DNA of 64,000 nucleotides from Oopsacas minuta (taxonomy: Eukaryota > Animalia > Porifera). A model generated the notes under the pieces. The model saw nothing but the letters and a program-made list of their open reading frames with translations. It had not been told where the DNA came from and made no database searches. This document shows positions 45,611 to 64,000 of the stretch, piece by piece. Position numbers and translations under genes: made by a program. Each line of letters opens with the position of its first letter. The first letter of the stretch is position 1. The DNA lies in the NCBI GenBank assembly GCA_024704765.1, contig JAKMXF010000288.1:310001-374000 (forward strand). Reading direction: 5' to 3'.

Positions 45611-48600
45611 TCATTTTTTGGCAGGTTTTGGTTTACTCTGGGTGGTATAAACTGAGAAAGGGTGACTACTCAATTGTCTTGATTTGGCTGTCGAAGGTGT
45701 TGAAATGGATCTCGATAAGGCGCCAGATTTTATCGACCTTTTATCTTCACTAGCGATAGAATACGCTGAGGTTATCGGTCGTTGTTTTGGCATGCAGTAT
45801 TGACATTTTTGGGTGGAACATCTGTTGTCTAACACCCTTTGAGTTGTGTGGATTAGGAAAGACTCAAAATCTGAGAAATCTTTGGACGCATGCCGGCCTA
45901 ACCAAGCTAGCGAACCGTTAGAATAGAACACGGCGAAGGTTGGCACGCCAATAATGGAATACACATCCACTGGATTTGGTTTTAGGCATTGACCGCATGC
46001 ACAGAAAAATTCGATAGAGGTAGTAGTTTGTTCCACTATTGACAACGCATTTGTGTGATTGGAATTCACGTGGCTATCTCCACTATTGATACAAACGCAA
46101 ACAAGTTTCATTTCTGTTGAATGACATTCGGCGAATTCTGTGAATAATTCAAGAAGTTTTATGGAAGATTTGCACCAAATTGTGAAGAAAAGGGCTACGA
46201 TTATGTTTTCAGATTTAGGCGGGAAAATCTCGATTCTTTCCTTGCTAACATTCCATACTTTCGTATTGTGGGTATTCTTGTTTTGTGTGTATTCTTGTTT
46301 ATCAAAATAACCTCTTGTTGTCAATTCTTTGAGTGTGAGTTTGGTATGTGAACACTCGGCCTCGAAAGAAGGTAAATAACAACAAACGGAAGCTTCACTG
46401 TGACAATTTTTTAGGCAAAATGAAGAAAAACTTGGAAAATCTTTTTCCCAGCTGATTGACAAACTTTCAGAAACTTCGCCAACACCAATTGGGTGTTCCG
46501 TACACGCGCGTACACAAATAGAGACACTTTCTGGATATTTATTTTTGTTTACTTCGACACTACAGTTTGTTTGTTTACTTGACAGATTCATATGTTTATT
46601 TCCATTCACACATACCTGGTATCCACTTATCAACACCTCAGGAGTGTCAACAACAACTTCCCAGCGTAGCAACACAGATATCAACATGGAATGTGATTGA
46701 AGATATTTTAACATAACAGAAATACTTTTCTCCATTTTAAGAAGCTCACTAGATAGCTCAGCAATTTCTTGGCATATTTTTTGCCCCTTAGGGGTCCGTG
46801 TGTCCACCCTCTTGGTTTGCTGCCAGCATAATTTCAACAATAAACTGTCTCTTTCATTTATCAAATTCAAAAGTTCTCCGATGCAATTCGTGCGTTTATT
46901 TAAACTCAAATTCGTGAAAAACACGATTGGTGGATCTGGCGTGATCGCCACTGACATTTGAATTATTTCTGAATAATATTCGGCGCCTAAGTTATCAGTT
47001 GCTCTTATGAAAACTACGAAATCTGATTGGTTCATGAGAGAATGGAATGTGTCCTTGCGTGTGTCGGGGGCCAAATCGACATGTGCGATACAATCGGGAT
47101 GCAACAAATAATTTTCAATTTTCTCAAAAAATTCATTTTTTGGTGCGCAAAATACGTCAATTTTTTCAACCTTCACATTCCCCATCTTTACAACGGTATC
47201 CATGGCAACAGCAATAGAATGTAGTTTGCCGGATGAAATTTGTTTTGGCGTAGGCACTTTCAAACCGGAAGTTTCTATAATCAAATTATTCGACAGTTTT
47301 GAATTCCCTACCAAATGATTGGTCAAGGCTTGCAATCTGAAAAAATACTCTCTGCATGGCAACGCATCATAACTAAAGGAATTCGCACCACTGTCAATTT
47401 CCACAGAATCCGTCTGATCTATAAATAGAACAAACCCGGTGACAGTAGCATCACCGTATTCAATAGGGTGCTTCCATTCTAAATGAATTTTATTGGAGGT
47501 TACTTCTTTTAAGGACAATCTCGGCATTGATGGTGTCGCTGGCGTTTGAATTTTTATCTGGGAAGAAGTGGCGATTAATTTGTCAGATTTTGCCATTGCC
47601 TTGACATGTATAAAGTAAATGGCGCCTGGGACACATTCTCGGATGGTGTAATATGAAATGGTATGTGTTAGTTTTGACACCTTTGGGATGGGGTGTGAGA
47701 TGGAACTCCACTCAACTCTAAAATGATTTGGAACCCTATCTTCTGGTGTGTAATAATTCCATCCCACTTCAATCGATTGACTTTTCACTTCCTTCAAAAA
47801 TGCATCGATATTTTTGCGGGCAACGCCATTTTTTGGATGTTTTTTCGTATGAACCAACGTTTGGATGATGTTTGAGAAAATCCGTTTCGGAATTTCTTCA
47901 CTCACCAAAGCTTGTAGTTTCAAATTATAATTTTCAGAGGCTTTTATAGGTAAGAAAGCCTCGAAATTGATTGGTTGTAACTCAGGGCCTATCACTATAT
48001 CATCACTGTACATTTGATATCCACATATGAGGAAGTCACAATATTGACGTGGCTCGTGCCATTTTATGTTCACACCTCTTGGACTGGGTATATCTGAGAA
48101 TTGTATGAAAGGTGGTTCAGGTGGCGAAGAAATCTGGGAGTGAAAAATTGGCGAAAAAATAGTTTTTTCAGCAAAGTTTAAACAAATTTGGACAACGCAA
48201 ACTAATTTCGGAATTGGATTTTCTATTTGGAATTCAGTCTGTGTATTCGTGAGCACAGTTTCATGTTTGTAGTCATCATTTTTGTACCACCAAATGAGCT
48301 TAATCGTCATTAGGTCCTTCAAATTTGATAGATTCAACCTCCACGACACATTCACACATCCTAAAACGGAATCTGATTGGTCAGCACAACCCTTAAGATC
48401 GATATAATGCATCGAACAAAACACAAAATATTGCGCAAAATTTCGAAAATCGACCAGTAAAGATTCGGACTCATTTTCCTCATCAAATACTAACATTTTT
48501 TCGTTATTCGCTCGACAGGAAGTTCTCCCTAAGGCAACCAACTTAATCTCAAATAAACTATTTTGCGTACGATTCACACATACGCTATATTTGGTCGTAT

Positions 48601-51600
48601 TCCTATTCAATATACGTTGAGATGTTCCGTTAACATAAATACGATAGCCTTTGAAAATACTTCTAATATTGCCGTCAATAGATTGATGAGTCAAAGACTT
48701 ATTCCATGATATCATTAGAGTCGATGGGTTAATCTCTGAGAGGAATAAAATGGGCTTCTCCGGCGGCGCTGGCAACCGGAAAATATTCTTTACCAACAGG
48801 ACTCTATACATTTCAGAGGGTTCATCTGGTTGCAAGAGATTACAATGCAATAGGATTTGATATATTAAACCTGTAGGCAAATTTTTGAAAACATGGTCAG
48901 TTGCAATTTTGTCCAAATCGAGTATTTGTGGCTGATTCGAAGTCTCCTCACAATGAATATCAGATGGTTCATTACCGATACAACACTCCAACGTGTATGA
49001 AAATAATTTCACACTTTCGGGGAACTTTATCTGCCCCCAAACAACTAGAACCTCTCCTTCCTCGTTGGATGTCACTTGAAGTTGAGTATTAAGGTCTAAT
49101 GACAATGTGCGGACGTCGAGTCTCACAGCTGTATGCAGGGACAATAAAATCCGAGATTTCATCTCGTAGGCCTCGATAGGGTCCGAACTTTTCTCCCAGA
49201 TTAGCTTCAAATCGTCACGGACACTATAAAACTCGATAAAGTAGGCAGTATTCGACTTTAAATCGTCCATCTCAAAATGGGATTGTGTGAAATTGACTTT
49301 TTCAAATCGGACAAATACTTTATTTTCGTAATACACAAATGCCCAAATATGCCATGAGACCAGTTTGATGAGTTCAGCAGACCTTGAGTCCCATTTCACA
49401 CGGATTCTATCGAACCATAAGATATCTGGGTTGAGGTTTAATGGGGGTAAAGGTGGACCAGGGGACATGAAGGTAAACGGTTCTGTTTTTGCCTCAATGA
49501 ACTCTCCATTTCTATTTTTGTGGAAAACTGTAATTTCTAATTTATAAAGCGTCCAAGGTAAAAGTCCTAAAAGTTTATAAGAGTACTCATCGATAGATTT
49601 GTAAACTATTCGTTTCATATCACATTCCAAAGGATCCTCAACTGGTTTCCATAACAACGCGAAACTATCTGGCACTAGAAAAACTCCATTTTTCCGTTCC
49701 ACCTTCCAAAAGACCTTGACGCTGGTGCCGAAACATGGGATCACTTTTTGTACCAACGGTAATGGGAGAATTCCAGAAAATTCGAATTCCAAAGGATCAC
49801 TCATGTTGCAAGAATCGTATGCTTCTATTGGTTGAGATTCAGTATAGGAAATGCCATTAGAATTCCCACAAGGATGATTAGTCAGTGCTAAAATCGTGAA
49901 AACATATTTCATCCCAGGTGTTGGGTTGTTAAGTGAGAAGGAAAGGTGTGAAAATGTGATTATTTCGTTGAAAGCGGTTTCGTTTATGAAGACGACATAC
50001 CCCAAGATAGGCGCGGTAACTATGGTAGCTTCTTCCCATTGAATATGAATCGCTGATCGGTTGAATGAAGTGAGAATTGGTCGTTTAGGTATTGGAGGTC
50101 CAGGTGTAGTAAAATTCACTACGTAGCTTGGAGATTCAATGGGTAGAATATATAATATGTTATTTGAGGTGTCGATATGATGTTCTGGGTATAACACCTT
50201 TGTTGATAAAGTATATGAGTGCCCCAGTTTTGAGTTGAAAAGTATGATTTCATTTTCAAAGAATGTCAGGTAGGGAGTGCCTTGCATTTCATCACTGGTT
50301 GAACCTTCAAATGTACACGATTGGCCGTCAGGAGAAATGCATGTAATGTGGTAGTGGATTTTGTTAGGTTTTATTTGTGAAGAATTTTGGCCAATCTCAG
50401 ACCGGAAAAATTCGGTTTGTTTTGTAAATCTCAAATCTAGCGAATCTAGAGATAGAGATAGATCGTTTTCAGCGATAAGTTTCACAGAATTTTTAAAATT
50501 TTGATTCGGTTTAAGTGACACGGGTTGTATTCCAACGCTTTTTGCGAAGAAAATGTTCTTTGACAAACGGACAGGATTTGTATTTTCCTCATCCACAATT
50601 GCTACCAAACTCACACAATTCACAAGTCCAGTTTCAAATTCCTTTATGATGAAGTCCCCTACCGATGCGGACCCTGAAAATATTCCAACACCGTTCAGTT
50701 CTAGCATGGTCCGCTCCAAATTTATTTTCATAAAACACTCATTTCCATCAGAAATTTTCCAACACACTTCAATAAAACTTATCGCAAAATCTTTCGGCAA
50801 AAATTCTATTTTATATTCGTTCATTTGTTTGTTTACAGAATTGACTGATGAGTTTTTGCCAACTAAACTTATCAATGATGCTGTTCTGCTATTTTCACAC
50901 CTCTCAGAATTAGGCGCTAATTCATGTGAATCATTTTCCAATTCGCTTTCTATTATTGGAGTCATTGTAGAAGTAGAAAGTTGAGATATCGTCCGTTGTA
51001 TATGACTCAAAATTTCCCTACCAACCGACAACTCATGGATATTATTTTGCATCACAACAATATCCTCTTGGACAAAATTAGCTCCTTGCGGTCCAAAATG
51101 TTCCCCTATTTTCATAGAATCCCAGTCGTTGGCACAAATATCATCGCTTTCGACACTGAAACTTCTCCCATCTATATCTGTAGATGAAATTTTGGGAGAT
51201 TCGGTACTCAAACTTTTACTAAAAGGATGATTATATGTGAGTTGTGGAGATTCAAAAACAAGAGTTGTACCGTCAGAAGAGGTCGCAAGGGCCGACACCT
51301 GTATCACGTACACCTCCCCTTCTTCCAAATCCTCTAGAAACACGACACATTTTGATTCGTCACCTTTTTCAAATGGGCCTTCCTCAAATTCTGCTGGGAT
51401 ACAACAATTAAGTCGATCATCGACATGAACTGTGTATTCCCTAACAACGGGAATGGAATTTGTTTGGCGTTGCCAACTAATACGCACCAATTCCAATGCA
51501 GAATCTTTCCCAATGGACACTTCCGGAACAGTTGTAATTTCATAAAACGGAAATTCAAATTTAAAAGTGGCCGATTCGAGTAAAATATCACTTCCAATAT

Positions 51601-54166
51601 CGAAAATTTCCAAAAGAATTTTTTCGTCGTTTCCAGAGGTAAGATCTTTCAAAATACAAGAGTTATACGTGTTTAATGGAACGCTCATGTCTCTATGAGT
51701 AACCACGTGTTTGAAAATATGTTCCACTCCCTCTCGAGGATACCGCCATTGGACACGAGCACTGGAAAACGTCACAGGTTCGAAAGAAATTTTTGGTTGA
51801 TAAATCCGATTTTCCGTCCGATCAGATATTCGTAGAGGCTGTGATGTATGAATTTTACTATTAATACAACCATCTTCATCAAATGCAACCACACGCATAA
51901 CAACGAAACCTTCACTATGGAATTTAATAGCATTCTCCGACATAACTTGAGTGTCAGGTGAATTTGAAATCGGACACGAACCATCGAGGGTATAAATAAT
52001 ATTTTGTCCTGTCTCGAAATAAACTGAATCGCCGACAACAGCTTCATTCCACTCAACAATTGGCATATTAGGTGTCGGACAGACACAAGTGTCATGTGAT
52101 ATCTTAACCACAATCAGCTGATTCATGAATTCTAATTGATACATTCCTTCTTTCCAAAATGTAACCATGATCAATTCAAGTGGATTCAATGTGATAGTGA
52201 TGGGCACCATTACAACCAGATTGGAATTCAGTGAAACCTCAATTTTAGAGTCAAAATTCGAACACAAAACTAGGAAATCGCCTGGATTCAAATACCTTTC
52301 ATTTCTAGCGAGAAATAATGGCAACAGAATGGTATTTTGAGCCAATATTTGGTCCGAAACTATGAAATAAGGAATAGGGACGACTGGGGCATTTTCCATT
52401 TCAACAAATCTCACATTCAAAAGAAATTGCAGGAGGCCTTGGACCGAGACATTTAATACTGAGCACCCTTGGCTAAGTTGTGTGACATAATCACTGAATT
52501 CAAATTCATTGGATACCACTTCTATTTGTAGATGAGGTGGACATACCCACACAATCCAGTCGTTTACACAAACTTTCAAAAGTTTCGGCTTAAGCACGAT
52601 TGATGGCGAACAGATTATCGTATGTACTTTCGTCGCTGGCCAGACTATGATTTCCCCACGGACCGGATGGTCATGTCCTTCACTGATGAAATAGAAATTT
52701 CCTAATTTGTCGAACCGCTGGTGAAAACCTGAATTGGAAGAGGGGTAGCCGTTATTTATCGGAGATAATCGACCATGAATTCGCTCACCATCGAAAGAAA
52801 CTTGTACAATATTATGCGAAGAAGCATCCTTACCCCAATACCACAAGATAGAGTCCCCTAGCGTGATGTCACAATTTTGTGGAGCAAACCCGGTCTGGTT
52901 TACCATAATATTATGGGTCTTATTCGAAGCAGAGGCAATAGCGATTAGTTTTTGTTCCGTTTTAAATAAATGCACTCCGAGATTTAAGACTCGATACTCG
53001 ATATACCTGCCCGCGAATATTTTCTCCATAAGCCTACCGGATAGTATGAATAAATCCTGATTATTTGATTGGCGGGTTCTAGCAGTTGTTACAGACAGTA
53101 ACGGAGGGTCTGTTTTTGATTGGCTGTTGAAACAAAGAAAGTCTCCTACTTTACATTCGAGAATTACTGAATCGAATCCTTGGCGGGAATATATGATTTC
53201 GTGACGCTTGGGGGCCGATTGGACTATTAGGAACCCAGAGGTGCTATTTGTCTCCCCGACTGTCGCAAAATTGTAGATCCCCGGTTTGGAAAATGTTCTG
53301 TAAAAATAGGGTCTTTTCATCATAGGTTCTGAGTTGAAATCTGAGTCATCAGTGAAGGTAATTTCTGTTTCAGATAAATGGAAAAGTACGGGGATGCCTG
53401 TGATAATTTCTGAGACCAAAGGCTCGACCCCTTCATCCCTGATCTCGACAAGATGTGACAAAGTTTGCGAGTAACTACGTAGACTACAAATATCCAATAT
53501 AAAATCAGTGCCTATAAAAATCGCGAATGTTGAAACTCCAGACCGCGAAGGGGTAAAAGTAATCTGCCCAGACCGTCCGACCTCAAAATCATAATGTGTG
53601 AAATTTCGAAAAACTTGCAATTCCAGATCGATTTCGCCTCTCGCAATTGAAATTGGAGAAGTCAAATTTTTCCATGTAAACACTACTGGCAATCCAATGT
53701 GGCCAATTAAATACGGGTATTCAAAGCCAGCGTCCGTTACAGCGCACTTTATTGGATTTCTAGTCAACACCATGACATTTATGAAATAAGAAATTCTTAC
53801 ATTTGGATTGAATTCAACCGCATTCTCAATCACAGCGAAAGTTAACCTAATCGGAAAATGGAATATCGTTTCGAATTCTGAGTTGTCCTCGTCTAAAACA
53901 AAATTGGTACCACCTTGGATGGGTGCATATTGTTGTCCACTTTTGAACACCTCAATCACGCGCCATTTTGATATCAGCCCAGGTGTGAACGTCCAGTGGA
54001 CACTATCATTGGTGGACATGTATAATTTATACTGGGTGTTACTCGTGGGTTGAGAAATGGCAATATTGTGGCGGTGTATTGGTTCTGTTTCAGACCATCC
54101 TGGTTGCTGGGGAACATTCTGTGTGGAATGTTGTACGTGTTTAGGTGTTGAACAACCTGTACCCAT
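45611..54166 (-). CDS. Giant single-exon protein (~2850 aa): acylation signal, cupredoxin-like repeats, Fn3-associated domain, FN3 array, C-terminal thioredoxin-like fold
   Basis: Uninterrupted 8.5 kb ORF. Likely start MGTGCS at 54166 (follows an AG acceptor). Cupredoxin-like VNQTGFAPQNCDITLGDSILWYW...HNIVQV; IIYTLDGSCP; many FN3 motifs (W..P...GY.V..N, Y...L.AL); C-terminal FFTIWCKSS...IIGVPTFAVF..NG..AWLG. Confidence 0.85.
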   Translation of the reverse strand: MGTGCSTPKHVQHSTQNVPQQPGWSETEPIHRHNIAISQPTSNTQYKLYMSTNDSVHWTFTPGLISKWRVIEVFKSGQQYAPIQGGTNFVLDEDNSEFETIFHFPIRLTFAVIENAVEFNPNVRISYFINVMVLTRNPIKCAVTDAGFEYPYLIGHIGLPVVFTWKNLTSPISIARGEIDLELQVFRNFTHYDFEVGRSGQITFTPSRSGVSTFAIFIGTDFILDICSLRSYSQTLSHLVEIRDEGVEPLVSEIITGIPVLFHLSETEITFTDDSDFNSEPMMKRPYFYRTFSKPGIYNFATVGETNSTSGFLIVQSAPKRHEIIYSRQGFDSVILECKVGDFLCFNSQSKTDPPLLSVTTARTRQSNNQDLFILSGRLMEKIFAGRYIEYRVLNLGVHLFKTEQKLIAIASASNKTHNIMVNQTGFAPQNCDITLGDSILWYWGKDASSHNIVQVSFDGERIHGRLSPINNGYPSSNSGFHQRFDKLGNFYFISEGHDHPVRGEIIVWPATKVHTIICSPSIVLKPKLLKVCVNDWIVWVCPPHLQIEVVSNEFEFSDYVTQLSQGCSVLNVSVQGLLQFLLNVRFVEMENAPVVPIPYFIVSDQILAQNTILLPLFLARNERYLNPGDFLVLCSNFDSKIEVSLNSNLVVMVPITITLNPLELIMVTFWKEGMYQLEFMNQLIVVKISHDTCVCPTPNMPIVEWNEAVVGDSVYFETGQNIIYTLDGSCPISNSPDTQVMSENAIKFHSEGFVVMRVVAFDEDGCINSKIHTSQPLRISDRTENRIYQPKISFEPVTFSSARVQWRYPREGVEHIFKHVVTHRDMSVPLNTYNSCILKDLTSGNDEKILLEIFDIGSDILLESATFKFEFPFYEITTVPEVSIGKDSALELVRISWQRQTNSIPVVREYTVHVDDRLNCCIPAEFEEGPFEKGDESKCVVFLEDLEEGEVYVIQVSALATSSDGTTLVFESPQLTYNHPFSKSLSTESPKISSTDIDGRSFSVESDDICANDWDSMKIGEHFGPQGANFVQEDIVVMQNNIHELSVGREILSHIQRTISQLSTSTMTPIIESELENDSHELAPNSERCENSRTASLISLVGKNSSVNSVNKQMNEYKIEFLPKDFAISFIEVCWKISDGNECFMKINLERTMLELNGVGIFSGSASVGDFIIKEFETGLVNCVSLVAIVDEENTNPVRLSKNIFFAKSVGIQPVSLKPNQNFKNSVKLIAENDLSLSLDSLDLRFTKQTEFFRSEIGQNSSQIKPNKIHYHITCISPDGQSCTFEGSTSDEMQGTPYLTFFENEIILFNSKLGHSYTLSTKVLYPEHHIDTSNNILYILPIESPSYVVNFTTPGPPIPKRPILTSFNRSAIHIQWEEATIVTAPILGYVVFINETAFNEIITFSHLSFSLNNPTPGMKYVFTILALTNHPCGNSNGISYTESQPIEAYDSCNMSDPLEFEFSGILPLPLVQKVIPCFGTSVKVFWKVERKNGVFLVPDSFALLWKPVEDPLECDMKRIVYKSIDEYSYKLLGLLPWTLYKLEITVFHKNRNGEFIEAKTEPFTFMSPGPPLPPLNLNPDILWFDRIRVKWDSRSAELIKLVSWHIWAFVYYENKVFVRFEKVNFTQSHFEMDDLKSNTAYFIEFYSVRDDLKLIWEKSSDPIEAYEMKSRILLSLHTAVRLDVRTLSLDLNTQLQVTSNEEGEVLVVWGQIKFPESVKLFSYTLECCIGNEPSDIHCEETSNQPQILDLDKIATDHVFKNLPTGLIYQILLHCNLLQPDEPSEMYRVLLVKNIFRLPAPPEKPILFLSEINPSTLMISWNKSLTHQSIDGNIRSIFKGYRIYVNGTSQRILNRNTTKYSVCVNRTQNSLFEIKLVALGRTSCRANNEKMLVFDEENESESLLVDFRNFAQYFVFCSMHYIDLKGCADQSDSVLGCVNVSWRLNLSNLKDLMTIKLIWWYKNDDYKHETVLTNTQTEFQIENPIPKLVCVVQICLNFAEKTIFSPIFHSQISSPPEPPFIQFSDIPSPRGVNIKWHEPRQYCDFLICGYQMYSDDIVIGPELQPINFEAFLPIKASENYNLKLQALVSEEIPKRIFSNIIQTLVHTKKHPKNGVARKNIDAFLKEVKSQSIEVGWNYYTPEDRVPNHFRVEWSSISHPIPKVSKLTHTISYYTIRECVPGAIYFIHVKAMAKSDKLIATSSQIKIQTPATPSMPRLSLKEVTSNKIHLEWKHPIEYGDATVTGFVLFIDQTDSVEIDSGANSFSYDALPCREYFFRLQALTNHLVGNSKLSNNLIIETSGLKVPTPKQISSGKLHSIAVAMDTVVKMGNVKVEKIDVFCAPKNEFFEKIENYLLHPDCIAHVDLAPDTRKDTFHSLMNQSDFVVFIRATDNLGAEYYSEIIQMSVAITPDPPIVFFTNLSLNKRTNCIGELLNLINERDSLLLKLCWQQTKRVDTRTPKGQKICQEIAELSSELLKMEKSISVMLKYLQSHSMLISVLLRWEVVVDTPEVLISGYQVCVNGNKHMNLSSKQTNCSVEVNKNKYPESVSICVRACTEHPIGVGEVSESLSISWEKDFPSFSSFCLKNCHSEASVCCYLPSFEAECSHTKLTLKELTTRGYFDKQEYTQNKNTHNTKVWNVSKERIEIFPPKSENIIVALFFTIWCKSSIKLLELFTEFAECHSTEMKLVCVCINSGDSHVNSNHTNALSIVEQTTTSIEFFCACGQCLKPNPVDVYSIIGVPTFAVFYSNGSLAWLGRHASKDFSDFESFLIHTTQRVLDNRCSTQKCQYCMPKQRPITSAYSIASEDKRSIKSGALSRSISTPSTAKSRQLSSHPFSVYTTQSKPKPAKK

Positions 54167-54275
54167 AAATCCTAATTGAATAGAAATATGATAAATATAT
54201 TGCAAGCTTGGCGATCACACTGTTACAGAAAACTTAGTTCTAAGACTGATAAGGCTTGTAAGCAGCCCACTATTC

Positions 54276-54289
54276 GTTACCATGGCAAC
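54276..54289. promoter_or_regulatory. Consensus RFX X-box upstream of the giant gene
   Basis: GTTACCATGGCAAC, 110 bp upstream of ATG; AAAC repeats (forkhead-like cores) at ~54335-54361; duplicated at 60863-60876. Confidence 0.6.
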
Positions 54290-55486
54290 AAAAGCCGTTT
54301 GGCTAATTGATACACATTCAATTGTCAATTATATACAAACAACAAACAAACAAACAAACAAATTTCTATAATATTAGAATATTGGAGATAAAATAGAAAG
54401 TTTTGAGTGTTTAAAGACAACCAAATGCAATAATTCTATATTCTAAACTAGGAAAATTCGCCTTTTCCCGCCATAAAATGATGTCTCAAGGTGGCACACG
54501 GATATTTCTAAGAAATATTTTCAAGAAAGATACACAATTGATTTCAAAGCTAAACATCTGGCAGAATGGAATTCAGTTCAAATCTATTTCAAAGACTTTG
54601 AAACAAATATTATACATCTTAACTTGGGCACAAATATGGCAACAAAGACGCAAAAAATGGGTCAAGTGGTTGTTAGAAATTCAAGGTGACAGATGGGGTA
54701 TTTGGAAAAGTGGGACACTATTGGCGGGAGTGTTTTTCAGGTTTGATAAAGAAGGAATAAAGAATGAAGAATTGATCAAGTGAGTTTATTCTTCATTTAG
54801 TATTATTGTAATATCCATAGTTGTTATTCTCTGTATAGTAACCAGGATTACTTACGAACTGTGCCGACCACGAAGTGATTCACGTTCCCGCTGCTAGCAC
54901 TCCCTTCGATTTACTTACCCCTAAATCAGACAATTAGTGTTACGATATAAGGAAAGATCCCTGATTTCAATTCCTTAAATAATATTTCGTCAATAATCAG
55001 AGAGGCGTCCGACGCTCTTAGATAAATCCTTCTTGCATACAATATTCGTTTGTTTAAAAGTGGCAGTATCATAATATTAGTACAGAAGGTGAATGAATTT
55101 GTAGAATTTACTCCCTAACAGTCATAGACATGTGTCCAATAGGGGGGCGAAACCGTTAGCGTTTAAGGCTCGTAAGCCCTCTAAAATGTGCTTAAGGGGT
55201 ATATTTACCCTATATTTTTCCAAAATATTGGAAAAACTGGAAAATTTCACGATTAGTGGATTATTGCGTTTTCGGCAACGTTAGACACTTCCTAACTTCT
55301 TTTTCAAATTTTGTATAGCTATCTTTTATAGTTATTAAAATATTCCACTTTTCCATAACTCATTTTCTGAATTTTGATCTAGATTTTGTCATAAAAATTT
55401 TATTTTCCATTTTTTCGCCAAAACCTCATTTTATTGTTCTTTTGACATTTGATAAATATTTCTATATGATTATATTTTGTTGAGAT

Positions 55487-55598
55487 GTTGCTATGGCCTA
55501 GTGGACGTGTGCTAAAGACTTAACTGCTGTATAGAGGCGAGGTCCGGGTTCGAATCCGGGACAGGAAGAAAATTTGATTTATCAGCTATAACACACAC
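55487..55598 (+). mobile_element. tRNA-derived SINE-like element
   Basis: A box tggcctagtgg (55494-55504), B box ggttcgaatcc (55547-55557), AC-rich tail; no acceptor or anticodon stem. Confidence 0.6.
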
Positions 55599-56120
55599 AA
55601 CAAATCGCATCTTTCCTTCCATGTGAAGAAACGGCGACAAAAATACACGAAGTCACCTCAAGAAATCTTTTGTTAACATCAAGTATTTTTCTTAAAATAT
55701 TTTCTCCATTTCATTCAGTAAAATGAGAGAATCGTGTTTATAGAGTTTAATATCATCAAACATTTCAATTAAACAACCTTGCAAAGACTCATACTTTGTC
55801 CAATGGGCTGTCGCACTCTGAACACAAAGATTGACACTCCTCCGTGGCAAGGCTACCTACGTTATCCTCATTGGAAAATGGAGTTGTGTTAGGAAAGGTT
55901 GTGGTGGAACAATTTCGGAAATATTCGCACATTGCATTTGTATGGCGCGCAACTTGCGTTGCTCGACATATGAAAAATGATAGAATAGTTTCATATCATC
56001 AAGGGATATAAAGGTGACGTCAGTAATAGTTTTGACACCTAGCTCGAATCTAGATTCTAGATCGTGTTTGATGAAAATATCTCGCAATGTTCTTTCCTTG
56101 AGTGCTTGAGAATCAGCCAT
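55582..56120 (-). pseudogene. SAM-caspase N-half, copy 1
   Basis: SAM-like ORF MADSQ...EQRKLRAIQ, then in shifted frames YESLQGCLIEMFDDIKLYK and EVTSCIFVAVSSHGRKDAICC (caspase catalytic His motif). Confidence 0.75.
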
Positions 56121-56719
56121 TTGTTATATATTCTAATTGTTGAAGGATATTTTGGTCAGAATTTGCCTTTTTAAAATCTAAATTAGTCAAACTATAACTA
56201 CCCAAAAGGTGTGAAAATATTCACATATCCCCGAGGTACACATCTAAACCCCCAAAAGTATCCATGTGCCAATTTTCATGCCAATAGGATATCGCTGAGT
56301 ACGTTCAGCGCTGAACTACGTGCTGGGTACTTTTTATATACAGTATACATATTACTTCTAAGCAGAATTTGAATCTTCATATACATATCACATATGTCGA
56401 TGCTGGTTATAACAAACTCGCGTTTTAAATGGTCTATCTATTCTTAATGAATCGTGTTCTTATACACCCAACTGTGCAGTATTACCAGATTTTACAGTAG
56501 TGTTATTGGTTTAACTGTTTATGATTTTTACGATATTTCGTGTATAAGCGCTACAGGTACTTTCTTAATCACTGAGATTTACTCAAAATTGTAGGCTTTT
56601 TCACTTCAAAACTTCCAAGGAAAATAGAACAAGCAAGCATACTATTTTCATATTGTTTTTGCATATAACTAATAATGTAAATATTCAACTCAATACTACT
56701 ACTAGAATTGTGATATTGT

Positions 56720-57037
56720 TCATAGTTGCATTTTGTTGAATGAAATCACTAAAGTTGTGGGTGCAAACGATGATCCCACAGCAGATGAGTAAGGCCCCAT
56801 AGGTGGTAGTGGATCAATTCCTAAAATCTTTGCACACTGTATCTGTAACGCGCGTAACCTTTGTAGCTCGATATATGAAAAATTATGGACTTCTTTCATC
56901 TCCTCAGGCCAAAGAAATGTTACGTCACTAATTGTTTCGACGCCTAGCTCAATAAATAAATTGATTTTAGACTCGAAGCCGTATTCTATGACAATATCTT
57001 GCCATGTTCTTTGGTTGAATACTTGAGAAACTGCCAT
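56720..57037 (-). CDS. Stand-alone SAM-domain ORF, diverged paralog of the caspase prodomain
   Basis: WQDIVIEYGFESKINLFIELGVETISDVTFLWPEEMKEVHNFSYIELQRLRALQ fits the SAM pattern; no caspase sequence recognised downstream. Confidence 0.55.
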   Translation of the reverse strand: MAVSQVFNQRTWQDIVIEYGFESKINLFIELGVETISDVTFLWPEEMKEVHNFSYIELQRLRALQIQCAKILGIDPLPPMGPYSSAVGSSFAPTTLVISFNKMQL

Positions 57038-57157
57038 GTAAGTATATTTGCCTGTTTTAGAATTGAAGAATTGAAATATATTTCTATGATTCCATATTTA
57101 TAGTGTTGAAGGAAATAGAAGAATCATTAGGTTTCAAATAATGGAATATATTAATGA

Positions 57158-57307
57158 CAACTATCAATGACAGAATCCTTTGTTTGCTAAGTGTTATATT
57201 GATAATAGCAATTATTCTATTAGAGAAACAAAGGAATCAATATTGTGATATTAATAACAACTGTCAATGACAGAATCCTTTGTTTGCTAAGTGTTATATT
57301 GATAATA
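57158..57307 (+). repeat. 50-bp direct repeat, two copies with period 100
   Basis: caact(a/g)tcaatgacagaatcctttgtttgctaagtgttatattgataata at 57158 and 57258. Confidence 0.85.
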
Positions 57308-57319
57308 TTTCGTCGTGAT

Positions 57320-57430
57320 GTTGCTATGACCTAGTGGACGTGTGCTAAAGACTTAACTGCTGTATATACGCGGAGTCCCGGGTTCGAATCCGGGACAGGA
57401 AGAAAATTTGATTTATCAGCTATAACACAC
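57320..57430 (+). mobile_element. tRNA-derived SINE-like element, copy
   Basis: Same A/B boxes; tcccgg/ccggga T-arm-like stem; different 5' flank. Confidence 0.6.
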
Positions 57431-57880
57431 ACAACAAATCGCATCTTTCCTTCCATGTGAAGAAACGGCGACAAAAATACACTAAGGTCACCTCAAGAAA
57501 TCTTTTGTTAACATCAAGTATTTTCCTTAAAATATTTTCTCCATTTTCATTCAGTAAAATGAGAGAATCGTGTTTATAGAGTTTAATATCATCAAACATT
57601 TCAATTAACAACCTTGCAAAGACTCATACTTTGTCCAATGGGCTGTCGCACTCTGAACACAAAGATTCACACTCCTCCGTTGGCAAGGCTACCTACGTTA
57701 TTCTCATTGGAAAATGGAGTTGTGGAAACCAAGGGTGTTAGGGAAAGTTGTGATGGAACAATTTGGGAAATATTCGCATATTACATTTGCATGGCGCGCA
57801 ACTTGCGTTGCTCTATATGTGGTAAATTATAGAATTGTTAATTGTTTCATATCATCAAGGCTTGAGAATCTGCCATTTGT
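57416..57880 (-). pseudogene. SAM-caspase N-half, copy with deleted SAM start
   Basis: In one frame IEQRKLRAMQM*YANISQIVPSQLSLTPLVSTTPFSNENNVGSLANGGV*, then LIEMFDDIKLYKHDSLILLNENGENILRKILDVNKRFLEVT, frameshift, FVAVSSHG. Confidence 0.7.
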
Positions 57881-58127
57881 TATATATTCTATATTGTTGA
57901 AGGATATTTTGTCAATCATTATTTTCAGAGTGCGACTGCTCATTGAACACATGTTCGTCTTTGACAACAAACTTTTCAGGAATTGATTTGCTGAGCTGAG
58001 TAGGCTCTCTGGGTACAAAACACCTCCAAAATATATTGGCCTAACACTGGTAGTGAATATGAAATCAAATCTATTGAGAGCGAAGCCAAGAAATATTGAA
58101 TAAATTCGTTGAGTTGTTAATCTGTTA

Positions 58128-58241
58128 GCTGATAAATCAAATTTTCTTCCTGTCTCAGCTTCCTGTCTCAGGATTCGAACCCGGACCTCGCCTCTATACA
58201 GCAGTTAAGTCTTTAGCACACGTCCACTAGGCCATAGCAAC
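58128..58241 (-). mobile_element. tRNA-derived SINE-like element, inverted copy
   Basis: Reverse complement of the 55487 element with a small internal duplication (ttcctgtctcag twice). Confidence 0.6.
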
Positions 58242-59124
58242 ATCTCAACAAATATAATCACATAGAAATATTTATCAAATGTCAAAAGAACAATAAAATG
58301 AGGTTTTGACGAAAAAATGGAAAATAAACTTTTTATGACGAAATCTGTATCAAAATTCAGAAAATGAGTTATGTAAAAAGTGGAATATTTTCAAAACTAT
58401 AAAAGATAGCTATACAAAATTTGAAGAAGAAGTTAGGAAGTGTCTAACGTTGCCCAAAATGCAATAATCCACTAATCGTGAAATTTTCCAATTTTTCCAA
58501 AATTTTGTAAAATATACCCCTTAAGCACATTTTTGAGGCCTTACGAACCTTAAACGCCAACAGTTTCGCCCCCCTATTGGACACATGTCTATGACTGTTA
58601 GGGAGTAAATTCTACAAATTCATTCACCTTCTGTACTAATATTATGATACTGCCACTTTTAAACAAACGAATATTGTATGCAAGAAGGATTTATCTAAGA
58701 GCGTCGGACGCCTCTCTGATTATTGACGAAATATTATTTAAGGAATTGAAATCAGGGATCTTTCCTTATATCGTAACACTAATTGTCTGATTTAGAGGTA
58801 AGTAAATCGAAGGGAGTGCTAGCAGCGGGAACGTGAATCACTTCGTGGTCGGCACAGTTCGTAAGTAATCCTGGATATTACAATAATACTAAATGAAGAA
58901 TAAACTCATTTGATCAATTCTTCATTCTTTATTCCTTCTTTATCAAACCTGAAAAACACTCCCGCCAATAGTGTCCCACTTTTCCAAATACCCCATCTGT
59001 CGCCTTGAATTTTTAACAACCACTTGACCCATTTTTTGCGTCTTTGTTGCCATATTTGTGCCCAGGTTAAGATGTATAATATTTGTTTCAAAGTCTTTGA
59101 AATAGATTTGAACTGAATTCCATT
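58128..59124 (-). repeat. ~1 kb inverted duplicate of 54565-55590
   Basis: Reverse complement of the same block, with a 27-bp microhomology deletion. Confidence 0.9.
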
Positions 59125-59188
59125 AATAGATGATGTGTTCTTGTGCGATTAAATATAGTTAGAATTGTTAGTTTCTAATGAATAAGTA

Positions 59189-59598
59189 TTAAATGAATAG
59201 TAACTTGCTGAATGTAGATACCAAATACATTGTTTGTTTCAAATTCTATTTGCCATGTTGGAAGTTCCTATCCAACATGAGACTATTCGCAAAAGTCAGT
59301 ATACGACAAAATCTTCATTTCCAACAGTTTCATAAGCCTCTAAGAGTGCATTTACGAACCAAGATCCCTTGCTGGTGTCTCTATACGACACATAACCCGG
59401 AACACACGAGTACGCTACAAGGAAGTCACTCTCTTTCGTCGCAGCTCGGTAGGTAGCGAAATTTTCTGTGGTGGAGTCTGTTTCATCTTGGTCTCTTGAT
59501 TTATCCCCGCCGGCCTCAATCAATAAAACTTTTGGTTTGGAAATCAATTCTGGTATTTGCAGCATCGCAATCTTTCCAGTGGATCCATCAAAATACAA
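59189..59598 (-). pseudogene. Caspase C-half (end of p20 plus p10), degenerate
   Basis: FDG...KPKVLLIEAGGD (QACRG site lost), DFLVAYSCVPGYVSYRDTSKGSWFV, then frameshift and stop before STFSKLLFI*. Confidence 0.85.
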
Positions 59599-59906
59599 TA
59601 AAATCTAAAATTCAAACTGTGCGGACAGCTCAGTATACTAATTGAGTCTTTATAAAAGTGGCAGTATCATAATATTAGTACAGAAGGTAAAATGAATTTG
59701 TAGAATTTACTCCCTAACAGTCATAGACATGTGTCCAATAGGGGGGCGAAACCGTTGGCGTTTAAGGTTCGTAAGCCCTCAAAAATGTGCTTAACAGCCC
59801 AAGAGTGGTATCTTGCTGTGGGAGCGGGTGGGAGCGCCGCTTCCATTCTTTTTTTAACAAATCAAATTGGCAAGTAACAATTACTTCACAAGTTACTGAA
59901 TTTGTG

Positions 59907-60007
59907 TATCTGGGGCCTCATTTACTAAACAACTTAACTTAAGATTTGCTTAACTTAAAGTTAAGCAAATCTTAAGTTAAGTTGTTTAGTGAATGAGGCC
60001 CCAGATA
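59907..60007. repeat. Near-perfect 101-bp palindrome/hairpin
   Basis: 49-bp arms with one mismatch (T/G wobble) around a 3-nt TAA loop. Confidence 0.92.
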
Positions 60008-60469
60008 TCTACAGTAGCATACAATCAATATTTGAAATCAATTGAAATTTGTTCAAAATATAATTAAGTCGAGTTGAGAGAGCGAATGTTTACTTTATAG
60101 CGCCGTGAATGTATTGTACTTGTTTTGAAGAACAATGGGAAGTTTTACCTCTACTATGTATTATCCTATCCGAATCTAGCGTTAATCGTAAACAAAATAT
60201 TTATTTCAAATTATTCTTTTAATTAAGTAATAATTATATTATAAACTACGTATCCTGGAATGTAGGATATATAAAATTATTAATTATAATATTCTGAGCC
60301 CATAAACAAGAGGAATTTTGTAAGTATTATTAGTTAAATAATTTGGGGTACTCAATCACTTGTTAGAACTCTATTTTCAGATTTACTACTAAGCCTTTGA
60401 TATCATTCATATCTTATTAAGTCAATTACCGGTGTATTGTTTGAATTTTGTATTAGAAATTAGGATATA

Positions 60470-60777
60470 CAGTGGAACCTCCGAGATCCGGACAGTGTGG
60501 GACCGGAGGGTGCGCGGATCTCGGAAATATCTTTAACTCTATGGTAGTTACAACCCATAATGTACATATGAGTTCCCTTAGGTATTCGAATTCTGTTATT
60601 AAGTTTACATACTGTATGCAAACGTAATCTCGTCTGAAATATAGTAACTGAAGTCAACGTTAGTCTGAGGAGAATTATATGAAATGGTGAAATTCTTTTG
60701 GACTGATATAAAATAAGGGTTGCCCGGTTGAGGGAGGTGCACGGATCTTGGAGGTCCGGATCTCGGAGGTTCGACTG
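60470..60777. mobile_element. Tc1/mariner-pogo-type MITE
   Basis: TIRs cagtggaacctccgagatccggac / gtccggatctcggaggttcgactg, flanked by TA on both sides. Confidence 0.88.
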
Positions 60778-62067
60778 TATTCAATTGAATTAGAAATTAG
60801 AAATACCGCTCCCATACTTATAATTAGAGCAGGACATCCTGCTGATGAGTAGCCCACTATTCGTTACCATGGCAACAAAAGCTGTTTGGCTAACTGATAC
60901 ACATTCAATTGTCAATTATATACAAACAACAAACAAACAAACAAACAAACAAATTTCCATAATATTAGAATATTGGAGATAAATTAGAAAATTTTTGCGT
61001 GTTTAAAGACAACCAAATGCAATAATTCTATATTCTAAACTAGGAAAATTCGCCTTTTCCCGCCATAAAATGATGTCTCAAGGTGGCACACGGATATTTC
61101 TAAGAAATATTTTCAAGAAAGATACACAATTGATTTCAAAGCTAAACATCTGGCAGAATGGAATTCAGTTCAAATCTATTTCAAAGACTTTGAAACAAAT
61201 ATTATACATCTTAACTTGGGCACAAATATGGCAACAAAGACGCAAAAAATGGGTCAAGTGGTTGTTAGAAATTCAAGGTGACAGATGGGGTATTTGGAAA
61301 AGTGGGACACTATTGGCGGGAGTGTTTTTCAGGTTTGATAAAGAAGGAATAAAGAATGAAGAATTGATCAAGTGAGTTTATTCTTCATTTAGTATTATTG
61401 TAATATCCATAGTTGTTATTCTCTGTATAGTAACCAGGATTACTTACGAACTGTGCCGACCACGAAGTGATTCACGTTCCCGCTGCTAGCACTCCCTTCG
61501 ATTTACTTACCTCTAAATCAGACAATTAGTGTTACGATATAAGGAAAGATCCCTGATTTCAATTCCTTAAATAATATTTCGTCAATAATCAGAGAGGCGT
61601 CCGACGCTCTTAGATAAATCCTTCTTGCATACAATATTCGTTTGTTTAAAAGTGGCAGTATCATGATATTAGTACAGAAGGTGAATGAATTTGTAGAATT
61701 TACTCCCTAACAGTCATAGACATGTGTCCAATAGGGGGGCGAAACTGTTGGCGTTTAAGGTTCGTAAGGCCTCAAAAATGTGCTTAAGGGGTATATTTTA
61801 CAAAATTTTGGAAAAATTGGAAAATTTCACGATTAGTGGATTATTGCATTTTCGGCAACGTTAGACACTTCCAAACTTCTTTTTCAAATTTTGTATAGCT
61901 ATCTTTTATAGTTTTGAGAATATTCCACTTTCTACATAACTCATTTTCTGAATTTTGATCTAGATTTTGTCATAAAAATTTAATTTTCCATTTTTTCGTC
62001 AAAAGCTGATTTTATTGTTCTTTTGACATTTGATAAATATTTCTATATGATTATATTTTGTTGAGAT

Positions 62068-62180
62068 GTTGCTATGGCCTAGTGGACGTGTGCTAAAGAC
62101 TTAACTGCTGTATAGAGGCGAGGTCCGGGTTCGAATCCGGGACAGGAAGAAAATTTGATTTATCAGCTATAACACACACA
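62068..62180 (+). mobile_element. tRNA-derived SINE-like element, copy
   Basis: Matches the 55487 copy. Confidence 0.6.
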
Positions 62181-62710
62181 ACAAATCGCATCTTTCCTTC
62201 CATGTGAAGAAACGGCGACAAAAATACACGAAGTCACCTCAAGAAATCTTTTGTTAACATCAAGTATTTTTCTTAAAATATTTTCTCCATTTCATTCAGT
62301 AAAATGAGAGAATCGTGTTTATAGAGTTTAATATCATCAAACATTTCAATTAAACAACCTTGCAAAGACTCATACTTTGTCCAATGGGCTGTCGCACTCT
62401 GAACACAAAGATTGACACTCCTCCGTGGCAAGGCTACCTACGTTATCCTCATTGGAAAATGGAGTTGTGTTAGGAAAGGTTGTGGTGGAACAATTTCGGA
62501 AATATTCGCACATTGCATTTGTATGGCGCGCAGCTTGCGTTGCTCGACATATGAAAAATGATAGAATAGTTTCATATCATCAAGGCTAATAAGGGTTATG
62601 TCACGAATGGTTTTGACACCTAGCTCAAATAGCTCGAATCTAGATTCTAGGTCGTGTTTGATGAAAATCTCTCGCCATTTTCTTTGCTTAGGTGCTTGAA
62701 AATCTGCCAT
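62163..62710 (-). pseudogene. SAM-caspase N-half, copy 2
   Basis: Near-identical to 55582-56120 over the linker and caspase part; SAM start differs by substitutions and small indels. Confidence 0.75.
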
Positions 62711-63444: not shown

Positions 63445-64000
63445 TCATATAAATAACTGAGCACAAAGCGTGTGTCTGACCTCTGGTGGTTGTTTTATAC
63501 ATTTCACATGGTCTGTATCATGTTTGTAGTTCTGTAGCATATGATTACTTGTAGCTGTCAACAGATCTAAGATATTGGAATGACCATGCATCTCATCGAA
63601 GCATTCCCGTAACGAGGTTACAAACCAAGATCCGTTGTCTTTATCACGCCAAGCTTTGTAGCCCTCCACGCATGAATAAGCGACGAATAAATCCGTTTGC
63701 CGGGTCGCAACTTCCGGGAGAGAGTCCGAAACTATTTGGCTGTCCATATTGTCTCCTCGACACGCCTGTATGAATAAAACTTTGGGTTTTCCCACCAAAT
63801 GGTCCACTTCTTGTAGTATATTTAGAATAAAACTTACTTCGATATCTCCGCCATCAAAACAAGCCAGTTTATCGGGCCCCGCGCCATGTGTCGAGATGGC
63901 AATGAAAACACTTCTCATTTTTGCATTGTCCTTCACTACATTTTTAATGAATTCTTTAAAACCCAACTCATCTCCCTTTTTATTACAACAAATATTAGTT
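63445..64000 (-). CDS. Caspase (peptidase C14A), catalytic dyad intact, 5' end beyond window
   Basis: VFIAISTHG (His), KPKVLFIQACRG (Cys), DLFVAYSCVEGYKAWRD...GSWFV; frame is open up to the window edge. Confidence 0.93.
   Translation of the reverse strand, partial: TNICCNKKGDELGFKEFIKNVVKDNAKMRSVFIAISTHGAGPDKLACFDGGDIEVSFILNILQEVDHLVGKPKVLFIQACRGDNMDSQIVSDSLPEVATRQTDLFVAYSCVEGYKAWRDKDNGSWFVTSLRECFDEMHGHSNILDLLTATSNHMLQNYKHDTDHVKCIKQPPEVRHTLCAQLFI

Follow-up and report, generated by a model that had tools for sequence, protein, structure and literature searches.

Broken copies of a SAM-like-prodomain caspase at the probable decayed end of a caspase array in Oopsacas minuta

The usual account of how induced proximity activates caspases is built on the death fold, with prodomains of the CARD, DED or PYD type and matching adaptors. 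Elsewhere, SAM domains are joined to other enzymes, as an octamer with the TIR NADase in SARM1 and as a filament with the PARP in tankyrase. The caspase family itself has produced variants, such as the CARD-only proteins ICEBERG (CARD18), COP (CARD16) and INCA (CARD17), which arose from caspase-1 duplicates, and the caspases with double-stranded-RNA-binding domains of the sponge Geodia and of bivalves. Amphioxus carries TNFR-caspase, LRR-caspase, death-caspase and TIR-SAM proteins, and SAM-caspase is not listed among these combinations (PMC2575513). Here we describe a stretch of 64,000 nucleotides from Oopsacas minuta (contig JAKMXF010000288.1, positions 310,001 to 374,000; the window in what follows), in which three broken copies, all on the minus strand, carry a SAM-like frame and, behind it, the first half of a caspase p20 sequence, up to SSHGRKDAICC. 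The parent SAM-caspase architecture is real and apparently undescribed; the original prediction, made from the letters of the window, had also suggested that it might be undescribed, and we found no description of a SAM-caspase in the literature, within which coverage of subscription journals was incomplete.

Evidence for the architecture comes from intact relatives. A profile made from the SAM open reading frames (ORFs) of the window was scored against 1.84 billion representative proteins and matched only three, P0001, P0002 and P0003 (E 4e-19 to 1e-14), the first two being full-length SAM-like caspases (412 and 404 amino acids) and the third a fragment of 184 amino acids with the SAM-like domain and p20; P0005 (414 amino acids) and P0009 (403 amino acids) were added by later searches. 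P0001, P0002, P0005 and P0009 are each encoded by one uninterrupted ORF of 403–414 amino acids, in which a SAM-like domain at about residues 10–76 is followed by a poorly conserved linker of about 90 residues and a complete Peptidase_C14 domain (Pfam E 6e-32 for P0001 and 1e-33 for P0002). Both catalytic motifs are present, SSHG together with either QTCRG or HACRG. The view that the ancestral caspase gene lacked introns and encoded a SAM-fold prodomain, which would have fallen had no intact ORF existed, is upheld by these single-ORF relatives and by the five-helix models described below. When residues 1–80 of P0001 were used as the query of a word-filtered search, only P0001 and P0005 were matched, and in a word-filtered search with the full-length profile the closest matches outside sponges were avian caspase-8.

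Intact SAM-caspases lie at the matching position in four ENA assemblies (ERZ25072730, on two contigs; ERZ25766962; ERZ20067936; ERZ25072740). The gene order in these relatives is a class-I tRNA synthetase, four to six tandem caspases, the SAM-caspase and an Autophagy_act_C gene, followed by at least one more caspase, a small ORF on the opposite strand and a giant FN3-like gene (2852–2894 amino acids). The window holds the giant gene, the small ORF and caspases; the Autophagy_act_C (ATG3/ATG10-like) gene and its adjoining caspase of 366–372 amino acids were looked for and are absent from the window, a pattern that a deletion or rearrangement would leave if one of its breakpoints lay within the SAM-caspase. 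We consider it very probable that a tandem array of single-exon caspases ends here in decayed form, between 54.3 and 62.8 kb, and that the three copies are duplicates of a broken 5′ fragment of such a gene. Their parts are as follows.

55857–56120, minus strand: SAM-like ORF of copy 1, 87 amino acids (tblastn with P0001 residues 12–76, E 4e-16)
55594–55843, minus strand: first half of p20 of copy 1 (GGVSIFVF ... SCIFVAVSSHGRKDAICC), in three frames (tblastn with P0005 residues 201–261)
57416–57880, minus strand: copy 2, a SAM remnant, the linker and the first half of p20 with indels of its own (tblastn with P0005 residues 198–264)
62438–62710, minus strand: SAM-like ORF of copy 3, 90 amino acids (tblastn with P0001 residues 13–76, 58% identity, E 2e-17)
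62175–62424, minus strand: first half of p20 of copy 3, with lesions as in copy 1 (tblastn and DNA alignment A4)

The copies as wholes span 55582–56120, 57416–57880 and 62163–62710, and their placement by tblastn on residues 12–76 and about 198–264 of the intact relatives is far beyond chance. For instance, P0005 matches at 62347–62175 and at 55766–55594 (E 7.5e-10), corresponding to residues 198–261 or so of the intact caspase. All three are too broken to match the Peptidase_C14 profile in Pfam, and their caspase identity was established by tblastn. The presence of three copies, each with a SAM-like ORF and p20 sequence, was borne out in this way by the translations, by tblastn (with P0005 aligning over about 198–264) and by DNA alignment A4.

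The SAM part is most complete in copy 3; in copy 1, helix 2 is short by three codons relative to copy 3 (alignment A1), and in copy 2 there is a large internal deletion together with stop codons. In copies 1 and 3 the SAM ORF is followed by GGVSIFVF, LIEMFDDIKLYKHDSLILLNE and NGENILRKILDVNKRFLEVTSCIFVAVSSHGRKDAICC in three different frames. Copy 2 alone keeps 13 nucleotides of linker (57725–57737; A4), and in this copy the end of the SAM part, the linker and GGV*IFVF are all in one frame, with a TGA where copies 1 and 3 encode Ser. The segment NENGEN is open through copy 2 and frame-shifted in copies 1 and 3, with the reverse just before SSHG, and a single frameshift, which all three share, falls between GGVSIFVF and LIEMFDD. 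These placements (the 13-nucleotide linker, NENGEN, the site before SSHG and the one common shift) agree nearly letter for letter in A4 with those first proposed. Caspase homology in copy 1 stops at about 55597, and all three copies stop at the identical base after DAICC, some 30 nucleotides before a tRNA-like repeat. The catalytic dyad is incomplete in each, since SSHG is present and the sequence ends before the Cys segment.

The common frameshift and the common truncation at the repeat mean that the copies are not independent and that one already broken fragment was copied. Copies 1 and 3 lie in a duplicated segment of about 2 kb and are identical at 432 of 433 positions over the stretch that begins shortly before the SAM ORF ends and runs to the repeat, compared with about 89% identity within the SAM part, a mosaic that suggests conversion or a compound duplication. 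The ancestral fragment consisted of the SAM-like prodomain, a short linker and p20 up to the catalytic-histidine motif; it was very probably cut beside the tRNA-like repeat and then copied along with a 1.4-kb repeat unit. Judged by their reading frames, the copies are pseudogene fragments that would be unable to make a caspase. The one claim of the original prediction that failed is that the gene could be reconstructed from them: their single ancestor was already broken, nothing follows SSHGRKDAICC, no catalytic Cys is left, and the nearby p10 fragment is of another paralogue type, so that no whole gene can be rebuilt from the pieces. Rebuilding is also unnecessary, because intact single-exon orthologues exist.

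The N-terminal domain was assigned by several routes. AlphaFold gives five helices for the window's three ORFs (residues 5–18, 22–27, 35–39, 43–50 and 54–71; predicted local distance difference test, pLDDT, 76) and again five for a 17-sequence alignment (pLDDT 83, core about 90). The best Foldseek matches across PDB, Swiss-Prot, AFDB clusters and ESM Atlas are nearly all SAM domains (template-modelling (TM) score 0.55–0.77), as are nearly all top matches in PDB (TM score 0.55–0.68, root-mean-square deviation about 2–3 Å), and they include EphA2, SHIP2, SLy1, SAMSN1, tankyrase, BICC1, ANKS3, p63/p73 and SARM1. A VIA search, which is independent of Foldseek, returned about 30 SAM entries with Z 6–8.1 and the whole domain covered (SLy1, BICC1, CASKIN2, tankyrase and EphA5/SAMD5 among others). 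When the profile was compared with PDB sequences the SAM domain of ARAP2 ranked top (E 6.5e-4, full domain), followed by SAMSN1 and the p63 SAM, and SAM families make up about 80 of the 100 named ESM feature clusters that lie nearest. A CARD or DED, or no recognizable fold, would have told against the assignment; instead the domain finds SAM matches and no death fold. The roughly 45 caspases called in L001, L002, L004, L005 and L006, loci of the relatives, have no Pfam record of CARD, DED, PYD or DD, and death-fold families are found neither by hmmscan of P0001–P0003 nor among the structural matches listed.

Several results count against the assignment. The Foldseek E-values are weak (0.03–1), owing to the small size of the domain, and a Z of about 8 on a small helical bundle is indecisive alone. 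Pfam SAM gives no match for the window ORFs or for P0001–P0003 at E up to 1, and SAM_1, SAM_EPH, SAM_TNK and SAM_2 match one or two of the 17 members at E 0.008–0.13, below curated thresholds. The architecture is unannotated as a consequence, with Pfam seeing Peptidase_C14 alone. Additionally, one of the three groups into which the N-termini of the array fall (alignments A3 and A5–A7) is weakly linked to the others (group 3; hhalign probability 27%). Taking the models and the searches together, the N-terminal domain may be read with good, though not absolute, confidence as a divergent SAM domain. The homology between groups 1 and 2 is clear (hhalign probability 95%, E 4e-8), so that the SAM prodomain is older than much of the array expansion, and comparison of the sequences suggests that the array members hold at least two, possibly three, SAM-like prodomain subfamilies. 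Between the L001 and L004 orthologues the nonsynonymous divergence (dN) of the SAM domain equals that of the caspase domain (0.18) and that of the linker is 0.46; the ratio of dN to synonymous divergence (dS) in SAM is about 0.1, with dS near saturation.

A SAM-like module need not bind its own kind, and one alternative is that it binds nucleic acid, in the manner of the Smaug/Vts1 SAM or the C-terminal domain of RNA polymerase alpha, or an unrelated partner, the caspases being recruited to a ligand and not self-clustered. Polymerisation is absent from many SAM domains, RNA polymerase alpha C-terminal domains come close behind the SAM domains in the PDB profile search (E 0.02–0.06), and NusA AR2, the RNA-binding SAM of Smaug and RAD51 N-terminal domains are among the structural matches. 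As the best matches are canonical protein-binding SAM domains (ARAP2, SLy1, BICC1, tankyrase and EphA2) and extend over the full domain, we regard either role as unlikely, though as a fair alternative.

A second alternative concerns the SAM-only ORFs of the window (87, 90 and 105 amino acids), which might be expressed as decoys that bind SAM prodomains and damp clustering. It draws on a further ORF and on signs of transcription, for which the following features are needed.

56720–57037, minus strand: fourth SAM-like ORF, 105 amino acids, stand-alone, of the Oopsacas P0003/L003 type
56133–56134, minus strand: probable spliced-leader acceptor (TTAG), 12 nucleotides upstream of the copy-1 ATG, with loose end GTAAGTTTTTTTTTATGAA in run X3
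59638–59639, minus strand: second probable spliced-leader acceptor (TTAG), about 40 nucleotides upstream of the p10 fragment, with loose end GTAAGTTTTTT in run X3

No caspase sequence follows the fourth SAM ORF, which has 90.6% nucleotide identity to positions 11782–12416 of locus L003, the Oopsacas minuta contig JAKMXF010000107.1, to which parts of the window match at 90–95%. The same locus holds the public Oopsacas model KAI6658143.1 (P0003), a "hypothetical protein" of 184 amino acids that is the front of a SAM-like caspase (L003 10001–10943). The continuation of this gene, IEACRGN ... TLTKLLVI, lies in another frame and its SAM start in a third, and the frame changes are either two real frameshifts or assembly errors.

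Four public runs of unstated kind were considered, among which X3 was taken as RNA-like from its depth profile and the leader ends. Its profile is unlike that of the other three, with peaks of about 5700 at 56802–57077, within the fourth SAM ORF (against 35–450 in the flanks), and of about 4300 at 58872–59147, which covers a copy of the small ORF (58906–59091). Contig depth is not strand-specific and may stem from a paralogue at least 95% alike; the first peak reflects either the end of a short, abundant transcript or reads of a highly expressed paralogue. An X3 contig also ends at 57042, five nucleotides before the start codon (ATG) of the fourth SAM ORF, and continues into Illumina adaptor. 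The foreign ends at 56134 and 59639 start alike (GTAAGTTTTTT), with the longer form GTAAGTTTTTTTTTATGAA at 56134; on the RNA strand the leader ends ...AAAAAACTTAC, the AG that follows also fits the genome, and the leader sequence is absent from the window. The copy-1 SAM ORF and the p10 fragment thus appear to be transcribed and trans-spliced to a leader, a process that could possibly resolve a polycistronic caspase array. Glass sponges are reported to have compact genomes with mostly single-exon genes and spliced-leader trans-splicing (PMC10282587).

For the decoys speak the three SAM ORFs that are still open, the leader-like end 12 nucleotides upstream of the copy-1 ATG, the X3 peak in the fourth ORF and a counterpart of 104 amino acids that is open in L003. 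The substitutions lend them no clear support: between the fourth ORF and its Oopsacas counterpart, 20 changes are nonsynonymous and 2 synonymous, a ratio of nonsynonymous to synonymous polymorphism (pN/pS) of 2.8 that gives no sign of purifying selection, and the value of 0.41 between copies 1 and 3 comes from just 20 changes. Copy 1 is short of its three helix-2 codons, the SAM part of copy 2 is destroyed, a word-filtered search of a collection of 5.8 billion proteins found no stand-alone family members of 44–140 amino acids, and the depth carries the strand and paralogue limits given above. We consider a decoy function distinctly unlikely.

A third alternative is that the copies form a working gene with short introns or programmed frameshifts, and that the following feature is the downstream exon of copy 3.

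59189–59598, minus strand: end of caspase p20 and p10, fragment (Pfam Peptidase_C14 E 1.8e-16 over 59296–59598)

A GT does follow DAICC, TTTTAG precedes the 59598 ORF, and FDG resumes at the place expected from the caspase fold. The fragment is of another paralogue type, sharing by tblastn 69% identity with the L003 10545 ORF, which is the second one in the Oopsacas P0003-type gene, about 50% with the L001_7007 type and 31% with P0001; EAGGD replaces the active-site QACRG, leaving no catalytic Cys, and there are a frameshift after NEDFV and an in-frame stop after FQHGK. The X3 reads place a leader acceptor at 59639 and no cis-splice, the sole joint seen being a 666-nucleotide skip between repeats that is not GT/AG, and in the relatives the whole protein is in one ORF. 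A 2.5-kb intron linking copy 3 with the 59598 ORF was rejected on the grounds of the different paralogue, its dead active site, its own acceptor and the lack of a joint. Short introns at the frame changes were rejected likewise, as they would be about 20 nucleotides or less and copy 2 reads through the linker without any. A working gene is very improbable.

Short-read contigs from the four runs, which may share a sample with the assembly and are thus not fully independent, agree with the assembly, with no indel reported at the copy-1 lesions and a single one in copy 2, an insertion at 57606 in run X4 only that matches the version of the site in copies 1 and 3 and probably comes from a paralogue. 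That the copies are intact and the lesions assembly errors, as some indels in short homopolymer runs and the frameshifted P0003-type gene of the public contig might suggest, is extremely improbable given these contigs and given that the truncation, the 13-nucleotide gap and the copy-2 SAM deletion are too large for polishing errors.

The window has a G+C content of about 35–40% and long single-exon ORFs. Along the minus strand the order is caspase ORF 63445–63966, copy 3, a repeat unit, the p10 fragment, copy 2, the stand-alone SAM-like ORF, copy 1, another repeat unit and the giant ORF 45611–54205. The features not yet listed are these.

63445–64000, minus strand: intact caspase ORF (STHG, QACRG), which runs off the window end (Pfam E 6.5e-24)
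45611–54205, minus strand: giant single-exon ORF, 2864 amino acids, taken from the ORF list and serving as synteny anchor
54254–55650, unstranded: repeat unit of about 1.4 kb with the small conserved ORF (families D1, D2, D8, D10 and I1–I6)
55467–55570, plus strand: repeat with tRNA-like GGTTCGAATCC motif (families D4, D6, I8 and I10)
54478–54783 (plus strand), 61070–61375 (plus strand) and 58906–59091 (minus strand): small ORF, 91–102 amino acids, on the strand opposite to the caspases in the relatives
L001 13942–14235, L002 18085–18360, L005 13892–14185 and L006 14129–14437: small ORF in the relatives

The caspase ORF 63445–63966 has 53% identity to L001_5799, a type that has no SAM prodomain in the relatives. 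Counterparts of the giant ORF, with faint FN3 and Ig_RIMBP2 matches and lengths of 2852–2894 amino acids, flank the caspase array on the same side in L001, L004 and L006, and it is therefore a conserved gene and no ORF artefact. The small ORF keeps its position, with the last caspase on one side and the giant gene on the other, in the loci of four relatives; it has no Pfam match and is triplicated in the window, where it lies inside the repeat unit. This unit recurs in direct orientation at 60841–62230 and inverted at 58171–59124. The tRNA-like repeat has more copies at 57300–57402 and 62048–62150 and an inverted one at 58159–58252, begins about 30 nucleotides past the end of caspase homology and marks the truncation point common to the copies. 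ARAGORN and Rfam do not recognise it as a tRNA, and the resemblance is to a T-arm motif. A long hairpin at 59902–60012 scores on either strand against several unrelated models of microRNA precursors, reaching the gathering score of none (best 52.9 bits against 90), and is probably a palindromic repeat like a miniature inverted-repeat transposable element and no known microRNA.

Four open members of the L001 array (7007–8221, 8442–9671, 17966–18805 and 19623–20363) have lost catalytic residues, with altered motifs IEASRC; SSYG with IEAICN; IEASKA; and IQASRY, respectively. From their sequences these are probable pseudo-caspases, kept beside active ones.

How the intact enzymes are activated can be approached by analogy. 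The SAM prodomain would take the role that CARD or DED has in initiator caspases, and SAM–SAM contacts, homotypic or between paralogues, would gather zymogens for proximity-induced activation. That the narrow profile met this SAM type only in caspases, among all the representative proteins searched, fits homotypic use, weakly. The analogy itself is open to an objection, since supersaturation is said to be lacking in SAM polymers, which are also described as rare in innate-immune signalling (PMC13012725), and the comparison with death-fold nucleation may therefore fail. Weighing the analogy against this, we give activation by SAM oligomerisation close to an even chance, perhaps a little below it. 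Broader, and put forward tentatively as somewhat doubtful, is the idea that glass sponges run a whole expanded caspase family on SAM prodomains in place of the death fold, SAM–SAM assembly activating the zymogens with no need of CARD or DED adaptors, in which catalytically dead SAM-caspases and SAM-only remnants might act as modulators.

Were this broader idea true, it would be a second, independently evolved route to proximity-induced caspase activation, and one found in a syncytial animal. The absence of SAM polymers from innate-immune and death signalling has been argued to follow from their want of nucleation barriers (PMC13012725), and a conserved and selected family of caspases with SAM prodomains would offer that argument a natural counter-example as well as a ready case for testing it. 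The questions it poses are whether a polymer module that is not nucleated can drive a caspase switch, and whether these sponges put it to another use, for instance a graded activation in place of one that is all-or-none. The architecture is also one that standard annotation misses, with Peptidase_C14 alone reported by Pfam and a "hypothetical protein" as the Oopsacas model. For the window itself the meaning is more modest, its three copies being pseudogene fragments.

Among known systems the initiator caspases (caspase-2, -8, -9, -10, Dronc and CED-3) are similar in their long prodomain, flexible linker and complete Peptidase_C14 domain. They differ in that the sponge prodomain is predicted to be a five-helix SAM of about 65 amino acids and not a six-helix death fold, and in that no adaptor is known for it. 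CARD, DED, PYRIN and Dredd_N occur as partner domains in the 100 ESM Atlas clusters closest to P0001, and SAM never does. The CARD-only proteins provide a parallel for the SAM ORFs of 87–105 amino acids in the window, which are likewise duplicated, truncated caspase prodomains beside the parent cluster, the differences being that these are SAM and not CARD and that selection on them is not evident (pN/pS of the fourth ORF, above). A similar picture emerges for SARM1 and tankyrase, both of which are among the structural matches (Z 6.3–7.3) and join a SAM domain to an enzyme that needs clustering for its activity; in the sponge the enzyme is a caspase, the SAM identity to them is 10–20% and oligomerisation would be by analogy. 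With the unusual caspases of the amphioxus type the sponge proteins have in common an expanded family and a lineage-specific fusion to a non-canonical N-terminal module, and they are unlike them in that the SAM fusion is conserved in several genomes, with several paralogues per array.

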